Shown in pieces: positions 16,417 to 52,688 of a stretch of DNA of 64,000 bases. The notes under the pieces are model-generated. The model made no database searches. It had not been told where the DNA came from and saw only the letters and a program-made list of their open reading frames with translations. Position 1 is the first letter of the stretch. Every line of letters starts with the position of its first letter. The stretch is taken from contig NC_134473.1 in NCBI RefSeq assembly GCF_964194025.1, positions 11,780,001 to 11,844,000 of the forward strand, given 5' to 3'. The stretch is from Convolutriloba macropyga (Eukaryota). The position numbers and the translations under genes were made by a program.

Positions 16417-16720
16417 ATGGAACAAATGAACAGTAGCTTGTCAAATTTACTCGACTTAAGTACTCAAGATGTTGACAATACTAGTCAGGATATAGACTAC
16501 ACTGAACAAGTGTTCCTGCCTCCAACCTCAAGTGGCATCACACGAACTCACTCCACCACCCTCAATGCGACGGAGGGGAGGGATCCTGAATACTTGACAG
16601 AAGCTGCCTTCGCCCGAAGAGGCTACTACAGACCAAACCCAAGAAATACACAAAGAAGACGCAGGAACTCAATTTCAGTTTTACAACCACAGCAGCAGCA
16701 ACGTTCGAGATTTACTCGAG
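16417..16720 (+). CDS. Orphan gene A, copy 1, exon 1 (disordered; RRRRNSI motif)
   Basis: AAAATGGAAC start; paralogous to 37310-37601; phase-1 donor CGAG|GTTAAG at the same position as in copy 2. Confidence 0.75.
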
Positions 16721-17432
16721 GTTAAGCAATGCGTCATAATAAATTTATATTGAAATTCATAATTTCCGGTGACGTCTCAGCAAATAGTCGTGCAAAAATA
16801 TAAAAATTTCCTACAAATCTGATTGGTCAAAAATCTAAAAAACTGTAATTTTATTCTTTCAATAAACATAGATTCGTCATCCCAGCCCTGTTTGAAATTT
16901 CTTCTGAACATTGAAAAAGAAATCCACTAAAGTGTGCTGACTATCCAAAAATTTTAGCGCAAAAACCTTACATAATAATGATGTAAAAAGTGCTGAAATG
17001 CGCTGAAACTTTTTAACAAACGTGCTAACAAACCAGTTTTTAAAAAGTTTGGTTTATTTTTAAACTTTTCGAGCGTTGACGGAGTCATGAATCTCTCTGC
17101 TGAATTTTCAAAAATTATGCGTTGTCTGTGCCTCTCTCCTGTGTTCTATCGTAACCCTTCTCCGCCATTGCTTCGTAAAATCTTTGCATTAAATTAAATA
17201 TATATTTTAAAATTTTGTTAGAAATGCGCTTAAATTACGTAAGAAATTCACTAAAAATTCAGCGCCTTTCTTACATAAATTCAGCCAATTTCGGCGCTTT
17301 TCAGCGCATTTCTTAGAAAACGTTAATTATTCATCTAAGACCAAATTAAGTGGTAAGAACTAAATTCAATGAAATTGTTTAAAAGTGCGATGAATTTTGA
17401 GCATATTTTTTTTACAAAGTTTCTGCACAATT

Positions 17433-19209
17433 CAGCGGTCATTAAGTGCTCTTAGAGCCTTTCAGCTCTGTTTCAGCTTAAACTGTTTTGGAGACTTATA
17501 CTTATGGAGTGAAGGACTGTTGTTAGAGGCTGAAGACCCCTCCACTGTTTACCCTCTCCCCCACTATTTCGCCACCTCCGCTCGCTGTTACCCCCCACCC
17601 AACTGTTGCTCATCCCCCGTCCCTCCCCATCTCCTCCCCGGTGCATCCCCCCGTGGCTAAGTTCGAACAACCGATCGCTGAAAACACGCAATTTTATACT
17701 AATTTTCACAATTTTTTTCAAGCTTTTTGAAAATTTTTAACATTTTTCGATTTTTATAAGCCCCAGTTGTTTAAGAACCTCCTCTAGGTTTTACAAATAG
17801 GTTACCGCATAGTTTCTAGTGGTAATGGAATGGTTTCAACGTTTTAACAGCACTGATCTTTTTTGGCATTTTTTGGCAAAACGTGCAATTTTTCCAAATT
17901 TTTTGACATTTATTTTTCCTCATTCAGGTCTTTCCAGACTCAGGAGCCAGAATATCTCCTATGAGGTTTGAAAATAAAATTTTAACAAATTTCTTTTTGC
18001 CATAGAATAGTTTTTCAAATCTTTAATGTCACAAATTGTAGCAATTTTTTTGATAAAACTTGTTTTTTTCAAGATTTTTTTTAATTTTTTTTTGATTTTT
18101 AAGTTTTTTTGGTCTCAAGAGCCAAGGAATCTCCTTTAGAACTGGAAAATAGGTTATTGTATAATTTCTAGATGCAACGGAATGTAACGCAAGATTTTAA
18201 CATCACGAATATTAGCGTTTTTTGACAATCTTTGTGCATATTTTTCATTTTTTTGAAATTTAGTCGTTATTCAGGTTTTTTGGGCATCCAGTGTCAGAAA
18301 ACTTCCGTTAGGGTTTGATAATAGTTTACTGGAACATTTTTGTTACTCATGGATTAATTTTCTACTTTTGATATCAGGTTTAGTAACATATCAAGTTCAT
18401 TGAAATTTTTTTGTCATTTTTAAGTTTCTCTAGCCTCAAGAGCCATGGAACTTAATCTAGGTTTTGATAATAAGTTACAGCATAGTTTATAGATGTTTAC
18501 GGAATGTTTTTAAAGATTTTAATGTCACGAAATATAGCATTTTTTTCGAATTTTCGCAACTTTTTCATGTTTTTGAATATTTTCCGGCACCAGGGGCCCT
18601 GATACCTCCTCCAATTTTTGATAATAAGCTGCAGCATAGTTTTTAGAATTAATGGAATGGTGATCAATCTTCCTATTACTCCAGTTTTTTGTAATTTTTG
18701 GACAAAAATTAAATTTTTTTTCAAGTTTTTGGAAAATTTTTATCAAAGTCCAAGTGTATGGATCTTTATGTGCCAGTGAAACTGTTTGATGCTTGAACCA
18801 TGTATATGGATATTCTCTAGAAAACAAAATTGTTCTTAAGATTTTAATATCTTGAATTTCGCAAAATTTGTTGAAGTTTGCAGTTGCTTCCAAAACTTTT
18901 CAAAATATATTTTTTGAGTTTAACTACCAATACTGGCCAACAGAACTTTTGGAGTCTTGGAGATGAATTACATGAGAGAGCTTTTGAGACAGCAAATGGT
19001 TCTGAACTTTTTTATTGCGAAATTAATTTTTTTTGTATTTGATTGTGCCGTTTTCAGTTTTCTTTTATGATTTATTTACTAACAAGACTAGAAAACTAGA
19101 AGTTCCAGAGTTGAATCAAATCATGGAAAACTTTCCTATCTCACTCTCTTTTTCTCAGTCGAGTAGGGTTTCTTCCAATCCTTTTTTTTCACGTTTTATC
19201 TCTCTCTCA

Positions 19210-49680: not shown

Positions 49681-52314
49681 GTCTGACGCTCCTTTTAGTT
49701 TTACATTTGTTCACACAGCAAAGCTAAAAAAGTCAAACTTTCTGAATTAATTCTTCCTCTGACTTACGGTGTTTGTGCACGTGACGTCATTGCTCATTCT
49801 CTCTCTAGCAAAGGTTTTAACACCATTTGCGTGATTAGCTTTTGGTCAAACGTCACTTACCTCACTCAATAATATGACTTTTGCACTTAATTTTAATTTG
49901 AGTTAGATTTAGCTCAAAGGAACATATATGTGCAGATAAGGTCCCTAGTAAAAGGCTTCAGCGGAATGAATTTTAGCAAGCTTTATTAATTTATCGCTGA
50001 AATTTTTTACCTAGTTGTTTGAGCGGCCTCAATTTTTTTCTGTTTAGATCTGTATCTGTTTCTTTGTCTGTTATACGGCACGCAAGTCTATTCTTTCGCA
50101 GCTTTTCCGGCAATCTGCCGGTTATATTTTTTGGTTTAAATTACTTATGGAAAATTTTTCTGGACATCTTCAAGAATTTTTCGTGTTATTTACTAAATTT
50201 TTTTGGCGTTGGGTTTAATTGAAGTTCAGCAAACGTTCATAGAAAAGTAGAATTTTCACAAACACTTAGCTTTTTGCATCATTTTTCAATTTCTGAAATT
50301 TTTAAACTTTGTTTTCTGTCATCATTTAGACAGCAGAATGGTTATGTATTTTCTCTCATTCTCGATTGCTAAATAATGATCTTTCTTTTTTTCTACAAAT
50401 GCCCGTATTCTACACAGGTGAGCTTTTATCGTTCCAGCACTCCTCTATGGGCTATATTTGTATTCGCTCTGCTTCTATCAGTTTTCTTAAAGTTCATTCC
50501 ATTTTTATTTGCATTTGATCTCATATTCTTTTAACATGATGAGGACCAGATCATTTACTCTAATTACTTTTAATTGTTCTACTCAGCTTTATTGGGGCTT
50601 TAAGTATTTTTGGGAGTTAGATTATTTTCTTTTTTTTATTTTCTTTTTTTTATTTTCTTTTTGTTTCTTTTCATTTTTTCATGATTAATAATTTTTCAAA
50701 AATTTGTATTCAGTTGTCCGTGATATCTTCAACAAAAGAAAAGTTTATTTTGGTTTTTGGCTGGAATGCCGGGACGCTGAAATGGAAAATTAAATGTTTT
50801 AATCAGTTTTTTTCTTTAAAAATTTCACGACACTGTGATCATTATTTGCCTCATTTTTGTGTTCTTTCGGTTGCTAAGTTCTAAGTTTGTAAGTGCAAAA
50901 TCTTAAATTATTTCATGACAAATTTTAGCCTTGTCATCTTATTCGTCTTAGTAGCAATTTTCCATGTCATGAACTTTGGCTTTCTTCAACGCTTGCAGAT
51001 GTGTTTGTGAGAATGCGAAAACCTACGGTATCACGCTTTCACTGTGTTGTTCCTGTTAAAATTAAAGCATATTTGATAAATCGGAGGCCGTTCTGTAAGA
51101 GTTTAAAATGATGTTTTAATTGTTTTTGTAGCTTGTTCTAGTGATGCTCAAAATTTTCATGCCAGGATAACGGTTTTAAAATTTTACCAAAATATCTAAA
51201 CAAGTCATGTGAAGTAAAGAGTAAAGTTTTGAAAACAAAAAAATAATGGTTTCGTCTGCAATTAACGTTGTTATTAGAAAAGGTTCATCACTTCAAGTCG
51301 CTTCCCGAGTTTTTCTGGCTATTTCAATTTCAGTCATATCTCCTGCTACGCAGTTGAATTTGGGTGCGTGACCTCATTTGTTATTTTCGTTGACGCTTGA
51401 TTTTAGATTAATTTTCAAATTTTTTGACTGAAATTACTAAACAGAATGATTTCTGCAATCGCTTTGTGAAATTGAAACTTTGTAAGCAATTTTACTAATC
51501 GAAGATCAAAATAATGCATCTAAAATTTCGAGATTCGGTGTTTTGAACTTGGCATCTCGCACTTCCAATTAAATCAGAGCTTTATTGTTTTATGCATTTT
51601 CCCTGCATCATTTTTCTTATTGCATTTACTCCTCAAATTGAACCCTTTCAAAATTTTGAAAATAACAGTCGTGAAATTTATTATTATTGATCGTTTTTAC
51701 TTTCCAATGAATGTCAAGGAGGTCAATCTGCCGGCCATGTTTTGAAATTGGAGCGGAGAGTCCATTTTTGGAGGTTGTTTTAGTCAGGTTAACATAGTAG
51801 GGACCAAAAACCAACTCGAATTCAAGCTTCTTACGAAAATTCACCACCAAACCTCAACCTTGGATGTATTTTTGACGCCAATTTTTTTTTTGCTAGCAGG
51901 TCTATTTTATACAGTACATACTATTAGCTGGTTTAACTCCACTGCTGTCTGGGATTTTATGAAGAAATTCAGAAACTTTTGGGGTGAGAATGCAGGACTA
52001 AATTCAAACAGATATGCATTTAATGAAAAATTGATAATCAAACGAAACGTAAAACTTATAGTTAATACATAAAAAAAATCGGTAGCATTTTCAAATATCA
52101 CAGATGAACAAACAACAAACAATGACTTTCGTCTTGAAAAAAGTTTCTGTAAAGCACCTATTTGAGAATTAGGATTTCGATGCACAGTAAAACTGCGTGA
52201 GCAACTTTTGTTTATTGTTCCCCTTATCTATATATAAACTTTCATTGCTAATTTTGAAAAAAAAACAAATTAAAATTTTAATGCTCAAGTTTGGTTGACC
52301 ACATTTTTTGTTAG

Positions 52315-52688
52315 AATGGAACCTTTACGTTTAATTAAGTTTGCACCGAGAACAAGAAATGCTACAGCGCTCTCTTATCCGGGACAACCTAAATGAGGCT
52401 CAATTTGTGGCTAAAGAGTGCCTACTTGCCGACATTACAACCCAGGCCAAAAAGTGCAAATATCGCATCTCAAACTTGGACGACGATGTACTCATGGAAG
52501 CCATTCACGATGTGCAACGACGGAGACACAAACTTCATAGGTCGATGGAGATGGGAGAGGGCTGGATGTACATGAATGAAGATCCAGTAGAGACTAAAGA
52601 GTTCGAGAAGTTGATCTGCAGGTTCGCATATTCATTAAAGATGCCGTCTGCTGACAAGCCACCACTGTTGCCACCGTACTGTGACTGA
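52315..52688 (+). CDS. Orphan coding exon B, copy 2 (in-frame TAA at 52332-52334 if the homologous acceptor is used; intact from 52335)
   Basis: TTAG|AATGGA shared with B1; RDNL, RISNLD, EGWMY, EDP, KEF and ADKPPLLPPY are conserved. Confidence 0.72.

Follow-up and report, generated by a model that had tools for sequence, protein, structure and literature searches.

The region 16417-52688 of the analyzed window, a stretch of 64,000 nucleotides from the acoel Convolutriloba macropyga, very probably holds two members (g1 and g2) of a head-to-tail array that comprises three paralogous copies of one and the same four-coding-exon protein gene. Each copy consists of the exons e1, e2, e3 and a last exon, B, on the plus strand as read in the window, which are interrupted by introns of the phases 1, 0 and 2 (Table 1). 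The third full copy, g3, is situated approximately 64 kb past the end of the window and matches g1 and g2 regarding exons, order, strand and splice phases. Hence, the features by which tandem paralogues are recognized, i.e. the same orientation, the same number of exons and homologous intron positions and phases, as well as intact reading frames under purifying selection, are found throughout the array. After splicing, proteins of 349 aa (g1), 316 aa (g2) and 346 aa (g3) are obtained. The spliced g1 model is letter-for-letter identical to the C. macropyga protein XP_075247588.1 (LOC142340768; P0006 in our searches) in RefSeq, and the same is true for g3 and XP_075247590.1 (LOC142340770; P0001) from the same species. 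Both entries are labelled "uncharacterized protein" and carry no functional name. For g2, splicing at sites homologous to those of g1 and g3 likewise results in an intact ORF. An earlier sequence-only reading regarded the locus as hidden, which does not apply, because g1 and g3 are already modelled in RefSeq.

Table 1. Coding exons of g1 and g2 and the complementary elements at the ends of their third introns (window positions; a slash in a sequence marks the splice junction)
Feature	Position	Strand	Remarks
g1 (LOC142340768) coding exon 1	16417..16720	+	ATG at 16417; phase-1 donor GAG/GTTAAG; spliced model = XP_075247588.1
g1 coding exon 2	23359..23588	+	contains DIYGD motif and beginning of the predicted helical domain
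g1 coding exon 3	27193..27350	+	3' end = phase-2 GC donor GAG/GCTCCACT
g1 coding exon 4 (= B1)	34524..34881	+	acceptor GCTAAG/A; GWMY motif, PPLLPPYYDTI, stop codon
g2 coding exon 1	37310..37601	+	homologous splice model
g2 coding exon 2	43056..43207	+	78 nt (26 codons) shorter than exon 2 of g1/g3; in frame; without DIYGD
g2 coding exon 3	47184..47341	+	3' end = phase-2 GT donor AAG/GTTTCACT; g1/g3 have their GC donor at the homologous site
g2 coding exon 4 (= B2)	52340..52688	+	acceptor ATTAAG/T
g1 intron-3 5' element, GGCTCCACTCTCTC	27350..27363	+	last exon base and intron +1 to +13
g1 intron-3 3' element, GTTAGAATGGAGCC	34500..34513	+	ends 10 nt upstream of exon 4; 11/14 complementary to the 5' element
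g2 intron-3 5' element, GGTTTCACTCCAAC	47341..47354	+	complementary partner of the 3' element
g2 intron-3 3' element, GTTAGAATGGAACC	52310..52323	+	11 of 14 positions paired with the 5' element, one more by wobble

The earlier reading had divided the region into two coding units, A (e1 to e3) and B, and the four exon pairs on which it was built are all present at the proposed places on the plus strand. Comparison of the copies by tblastn recovered the pairs of e2 (E = 3.6e-7), e3 (E = 1.7e-12) and B (E = 3.6e-33), and the identities estimated by eye for the last two, about 43% and about 50%, were reproduced (24/56 = 43% and 50%, respectively). The e1 pair gives a weak match (E = 0.11), but its members have the RRRNSI motif in common and an identical donor, CGAG/GTTA. 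All four introns proposed within A show GT..AG borders and the phases 1, then 0. The products A1 (257 aa) and A2 (219 aa) exist as ORFs, but they represent read-throughs into intron 3 beyond the real ends of exon 3. The starts assigned to B (34505 and 52315) had to be corrected as well, the real exons beginning 19-25 nt further downstream (Table 1).

The relation between A and B is central for the interpretation of the locus. B has no in-frame ATG and its reading frame opens only past a conserved AAG/ acceptor, because B is the last coding exon that is spliced to e3 across a phase-2 intron. An ATG within GTTAGAATGGA was considered as start of B and rejected, since it lies in another frame and opens short ORFs that lack conservation. 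Splicing of B to e1 or e2, or via an upstream GTTAG/ acceptor, was also discarded, since the resulting frames are not conserved and g2 runs into a stop. A conserved additional exon between e3 and B was not found by three-way tblastx, which returned TE matches only. Collectively, the placement of the e3-B junctions within one gene is supported by the RefSeq models, by cDNA-like contigs of homologues and by the conservation of the sequence. The cDNA-like contigs (0.9-1.3 kb, intron-free) originate from JGI and Tara-type marine metatranscriptomes and encode P0003 (330 aa) and P0004 (264 aa), two remote members of the family in which A-like and B-like parts are found within a single uninterrupted ORF that is gap-free at the junction. 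Moreover, the junction codon 231 is placed by the AF2 model within a helix (residues 218-245) that is predicted with a pLDDT of about 94-95. All these observations speak against the assumption that A and B are separate linked units, duplicated as a cassette and acting as a toxin-antidote or drive system or as a recognition pair. It would be compatible with the constant co-occurrence of A and B in the same order, with the lack of a known domain in either part, and with TE-rich surroundings close to a satellite. Indeed, the co-occurrence that the earlier reading had proposed to check is seen again at other loci of the genome, where e3-like and B-like pieces follow each other in the same order, the introns are rich in TEs as it had stated, and the satellite (175-bp repeat) is located at 58084-63999. 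Nevertheless, we consider such a two-unit cassette highly improbable. A and B were indeed duplicated jointly and their frames are still open; this follows from their being exons of a single gene rather than two linked units.

The evolution of the copies points in the same direction as their structure, namely to a single gene under ordinary constraint. Between the copies, dN/dS is about 0.17-0.3, below the values near or above 1 that would go with rapid or positively selected evolution of a conflict cassette, and pS amounts to 0.5-0.85, i.e. synonymous sites are saturated. In comparison with a contig of the second haplotype, on which g1 and the start of g2 are collinear (one alternative contig seen), exons are 95-100% and introns 82-95% identical, and pN/pS reaches 0.20 in g1; in g2, a value of 0.19 was calculated from e1 and e2. 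Among the listed SNPs in e3 and B2 of g2 (n = 8), seven are synonymous and one is non-synonymous (exon 3, two synonymous and one non-synonymous; exon 4, five of five synonymous). These sequence comparisons indicate ordinary constraint with purifying selection on all array copies; the notion that the units are diverging fast could not be maintained. The low dN/dS and pN/pS values therefore give no sign of an arms race, and nothing observed at the locus suggests toxin-antidote function, drive or recognition. The array very probably arose when the whole gene was duplicated in tandem. This happened long ago, as judged from the saturated synonymous sites, and TEs entered the introns after the duplication.

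The status of g2 deserves separate consideration, because it might represent a silent or decaying duplicate with only g1 and g3 being functional. In this regard, the protein search seeded with the g1 protein recovered g3, and the g2 protein was not among the database matches; furthermore, the 26 codons missing from its exon 2 include the D-YGD motif, which is invariant in the four aligned family members. On the other hand, this deletion is in frame, the four exons form an intact ORF, the splice sites are canonical, and both the excess of synonymous SNPs and the haplotype pN/pS given above argue for constraint. A silent g2 is hence quite unlikely, and we regard g2 as a constrained member of the array.

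The most unusual part of the gene is intron 3 between e3 and B. It is 5-8.4 kb long, has phase 2, and possesses GC-AG borders in g1 and g3 but GT-AG borders in g2. Four DNA-like read runs covering 47100-52750 display an even depth across the g2 intron and hence carry no information on splicing. The donor is non-consensus in all copies, GAG/GCTCCA in g1 and g3 being a poor GC site and GTTTCA in g2 a weak GT site. Five distant paralogues lack an intron at the homologous site and read straight through. The ends of the intron carry conserved, mutually complementary 14-nt elements (Table 1), which form an imperfect inverted repeat (11/14; three non-independent copies), and the g2 elements show a compensatory C-G to U-A change in the predicted pairing. 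In addition, the borders show a direct repeat, AG/GCTCCAC versus AG/nCTGCAC (again three non-independent copies). From these sequence features a scenario could be drawn, in which the common ancestor of g1, g2 and g3 acquired intron 3, and pairing of its 14-nt ends, kept while synonymous sites became saturated, draws the two splice sites to each other over 5-8 kb or in some other way permits splicing at the non-consensus donor (GC or GT, then T(C/T)CAC). The repeats might be remnants of the event, an insertion or a duplication, from which the intron originated. We offer this scenario as a rather speculative explanation that is more probably wrong than right.

GC-AG spliceosomal introns make up about 1% of animal introns and usually have an otherwise strong AG/GCAAGT donor. 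Intron 3 of g1 and g3 resembles them in starting with GC and ending with AG, the g2 paralogue having GT at this position. However, the remaining donor positions (GCTCCA or GTTTCA) show hardly any agreement with the consensus and are complementary to the 3'-end element instead. Its clade-specific occurrence, the border direct repeat and the inverted repeat just inside its ends appear similar to introners or transposon-derived introns and to the pairing of intron ends known as RNA bridges. A search of the 1.18 Gb for the terminal motif GGCTCCAYTCYAAC gave 9 matches, compared with 10 when the motif was reversed as a control; since the motif is not repetitive, an introner family was rejected. A U12-type intron was also dismissed by eye, the U12 donor and branch-site motifs being missing from the splice-site sequences.

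The weak donor of intron 3 could also mean that retention of this intron yields an additional, shorter product without the B helices, corresponding to the 257-aa and 219-aa ORFs, beside the full-length protein. Past exon 3, the frames remain open over a further 17-27 codons, and in g1, g2 and g3 alike this added part begins with a conserved R(L/F)HS; a conserved upstream AG (GTTAG/AATGGA) would likewise truncate the product. However, the read-through tails are dissimilar past RLHS(N), and the conserved bases are equally accounted for by RNA pairing. Such an A-only isoform seems unlikely.

According to the AF2 model, residues 1-119 of the full-length protein are disordered, and this N-terminal region of about 120 aa carries the basic RRRNS(I/T) motif. 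It is followed by a predicted helical domain of about 210 aa to which e2, e3 and B all contribute. At the C-terminus, PPLLPPY is invariant in g1-g3, in a region modelled with low confidence, and is absent from P0003 and P0004. Compared with PPxY (PY) ligands of WW domains it is a candidate motif, the strict PPxY (as PPYY) being present in g1 only and g2 and g3 reading LPPY. As stated in the earlier reading, no domain is recognized; there was no Pfam match with either exons or full-length proteins. A PDB match was also not obtained by sequence profile, and Foldseek (PDB/AFDB/Atlas), VIA-wide and Atlas feature searches returned only rows of generic helical hairpins or coiled coils. The all-helical domain with its long antiparallel helices resembles Pil1 and BAR-type domains, but the comparison of Atlas features with Pil1 clusters gave a weak score inside the noise range (0.82), the Foldseek rows for Pil1/Lsp1 and F-BAR are weak (E of 0.1 or worse, TM < 0.25), and VIA gave Z <= 10 among many tied helical hairpins. 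Membership in the Pil1/BAR group was rejected, because in addition to these scores a Pfam match to PF13805 was missing. Hence, no relation of the family to a described domain could be detected. Very tentatively, the protein might serve as cytoplasmic coiled-coil adaptor or scaffold, and its regulation could involve the disordered region, through a basophilic-kinase site, as well as the proline-rich C-terminal peptide motif.

The C. macropyga genome contains at least seven loci of this family. At one locus of the genome (C7), a single ORF of 182 aa covers the profile positions 162-301 with a weak match (E = 0.01), and hhalign aligned the A-like part alone (83% probability). Outside the genome, relatives are scarce. 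The exhaustive profile search found five matches among 1.84 billion representatives, nothing further came from word-indexed protein searches in which P0006, alignment A2 and P0003 served as queries, and no relative was confirmed in a scan of metagenome loci. Judged from these searches, the family seems to be restricted to this acoel and a few marine metatranscriptome sequences, and it appears to be undescribed.

Ordinary constraint and the existence of RefSeq models indicate that the region 16417-52688 is not a conflict locus, which removes the false lead of a hidden two-gene cassette. The region rather reflects an unremarkable, ancient tandem amplification of a single gene; two of its three copies are modelled in public annotation. 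What remains noteworthy is a lineage-restricted helical family without detectable relatives at seven or more loci of an acoel genome. Furthermore, intron 3 could become a small natural test case for the recognition of weak splice sites across long introns. Unlike ordinary tandem families, the array gene is an orphan for which neither Pfam, nor the PDB, nor fold comparison yielded a relative. The array resembles the ordinary tandem gene families of animal genomes, with copies on the same strand that share exon-intron plan and splice phases, show old divergence and purifying selection, and carry TEs in their introns.

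At this locus Convolutriloba macropyga carries tandem copies of one orphan gene that is annotated but uncharacterised; two of them (g1 and g2) lie in the window and a third (g3) about 64 kb past its end. The sequence-only reading had described four paralogous exon pairs (e1, e2, e3 and B), and this observation is confirmed, because exons, introns, phases and ORFs were reproduced and tblastn matched the pairs. Translation at its coordinates returns all exons and the 257-aa and 219-aa ORFs of e1-e3 ("A"), the proposed introns are GT..AG in four of four cases with phases 1 then 0, and the two halves are 43% identical in e3 (E = 1.7e-12) and 50% in B (E = 3.6e-33), with e1 and e2 matching at E = 0.11 and 3.6e-7. 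A nucleotide comparison of the two units matched TE fragments only (65-88% identity), with no match between the exons.

The interpretation of A and B as separate units of a duplicated cassette is wrong, because RefSeq proteins join them in one ORF and the B frame has no ATG. The conserved B frame opens solely downstream of a phase-2 acceptor, (C/T)TAAG|, that is itself conserved, and the e3 similarity stops at ..R(L/F)HS. Searched exhaustively with a profile built from the B exons of all three copies, 1.84 billion representatives gave only five matching proteins. The best match, P0001 (346 aa, B part at residues 231-346), was identified by cluster look-up as XP_075247590.1 (LOC142340770) and P0006 (349 aa) as XP_075247588.1 (LOC142340768), each an "uncharacterized protein" of C. 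macropyga. Splicing e1, e2, e3 (to 27350) and B (from 34524) of g1 yields exactly P0006, the equivalent join of g3 outside the window exactly P0001, and the homologous splice of g2 an intact 316-aa ORF. Two further members, P0003 (330 aa) and P0004 (264 aa), are encoded on intron-free contigs of 0.9-1.3 kb from marine metatranscriptomes and align across A-like and B-like parts without a gap at the junction. The search for an extra conserved exon between e3 and B found none, and the AF2 model places junction codon 231 within helix 218-245 (pLDDT ~94-95).

More diverged loci of the family came up in a profile search of the whole 1.176-Gb assembly (see table). Strand, phases and donor sequences of g3 match g1 and g2, intron 3 being GC-AG in g1 and g3 (AG|GCTCCACT) and GT-AG in g2 (AG|GTTTCACT). 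Every locus that shows both pieces has them on one strand, the e3-like first and the B-like second; on C7 one 182-aa ORF covers profile positions 162-301, a weak match (E = 0.01). The weak members downstream of g3 suggest that the array belongs to a larger, older cluster. Five of the six canonical donors of introns 1 and 2 in g1-g3 read GTTA instead of the usual GTAAG/GTGAG; splice-site preferences may be unusual in this acoel.

Gene copies, family loci, donor sites and repeats at and around the array (C6 position = window coordinate + 11,780,000)
Feature	Coordinates	Remarks
g3 e1	C6 11896635-11896935	same strand as g1, g2
g3 e2	C6 11904247-11904479	same strand as g1, g2
g3 e3	C6 11906090-11906247	same strand as g1, g2
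g3 B	C6 11914683-11915031	same strand as g1, g2
Diverged family locus	C6 ~8.288 Mb, plus haplotig C2742	genome-wide profile search
Diverged family locus	C6 ~12.186 Mb	genome-wide profile search
Diverged family locus	C7 ~18.756 Mb	genome-wide profile search
Diverged family locus	C1185	genome-wide profile search
Two weak family loci	82 kb and 109 kb beyond window's end	genome-wide profile search
These weak, more diverged members, by C6 coordinates	C6 11925518-11925736, 11929851-11930027, 11952642-11953127	downstream of g3
Example donors, introns 1 and 2	window 16721, 23589, 37602, 43208	
Bel/Pao-type LTR retrotransposon	window 596-6335 (+)	long open frames
Nested tandem repeats	window 7052-8984	periods 32, 98, 130, 228, 326 bp; unit TATGTAAGATC..ACGC
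G-rich minisatellite (GTCGGCGGAG)n	window 28838-29163	periods 10, 37, 47; inside g1 intron 3
Intron-3 repeat	window 32750-33724 (g1), 49179-50123 (g2)	
175-bp satellite	window 58084-63999	~33 copies, 82% match; strong skew, C over G; reaches window's end

The duplication is old, and purifying selection continues in both window copies. The earlier description as "diverging fast" is not borne out, with synonymous sites between paralogues saturated (pS 0.5-0.85, pN ~0.2-0.33), a dN/dS of ~0.17-0.3 in e3 and B, and a pN/pS of about 0.2 between haplotypes. On a second haplotype contig (ENA ERZ25071359) exons are 95-100% and surrounding introns 82-95% identical; genome heterozygosity is 3.65% (PMC13650328). 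Against this haplotype, g1 has 8 synonymous differences and 6 non-synonymous ones (pN/pS 0.20) and e1 plus e2 of g2 have 11 and 7 (pN/pS 0.19), and seven of the eight SNPs listed from DNA reads for e3 and B of g2 are synonymous, one non-synonymous. This signal is present in g2 even though its exon 2 (window 43056-43207) has lost, in frame, 26 codons that g1 and g3 retain, and with them the D-YGD motif, invariant in aligned family members.

Concerning the surrounding DNA, the Bel/Pao element matches the Pfam families DUF1759 (gag-like), Peptidase_A17 (Pao), Integrase_H2C2 and DUF5641. Summed contig word depth in DNA runs is mostly ~2e5 to 1.5e6 over the g2 intron-3 repeat (~5e4 in one bin) and ~30-50 in flanking DNA; the repeat is therefore a very high-copy element of the genome.

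In five distant paralogues intron 2 lies at the same position (Q|C.I) and the frame reads on for 15-45 codons beyond the intron-3 site, hence intron 3 is specific to the g1-g3 clade. All three copies have kept two elements in it even though synonymous sites are saturated: GG(C/T)T(C/T)CACTC.. at the 5' end (last exon base plus first 13 intron bases) and GTTAGAATGGA(G/A)C(C/G), ending 10-16 nt upstream of the acceptor. The 11-mer GTTAGAATGGA is confined to these 3' sites (0.03 expected by chance in the window), and a genome search did not find the motif to be repetitive. The elements are reverse-complementary. Of 14 positions, 11 pair in g1 and g3; g2 has 11 pairs and one wobble, together with a compensatory C-G to U-A change. 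The duplexes have energies of -18.2, -12.8 and -16.1 kcal/mol (z = -3.7, -2.5 and -2.5), and end-pairing of introns 1 and 2 has z ~0. In the second haplotype both elements are unchanged, substitutions starting right after the 5' element. The intron start resembles the exon-4 start (AG|GCTCCAC vs AG|nCTGCAC). These features fit the hypothesis, built on three related copies and given a low probability, that insertion or duplication made intron 3 and that end-pairing was kept for splicing.

The absence of a known domain, as noted before, was upheld by a Pfam search that gave no family. No sequence relative was found in the PDB, and an Atlas feature search with the whole protein gave no usable match. 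Kinship to Pil1 was rejected, since Pil1 clusters scored 0.82 on Atlas features, inside the stated noise range. The AF2 model is disordered at residues 1-119 and helical at 120-330. Motifs kept across the aligned family are D-YGD, W...Y, LHY, HW....RM.(D/N)E, NR.KL, E.R..NL and GWMY, and RRRNS and the C-terminal PPLLPPY are more narrowly distributed. Structural comparisons by Foldseek (PDB, AFDB clusters, Atlas; E >= 0.1, TM < 0.25) and VIA-wide (Z <= 10 among many ties) returned generic long-helix, hairpin and coiled-coil entries only. Our best guess is that the protein might act as a phospho-regulated coiled-coil adaptor.
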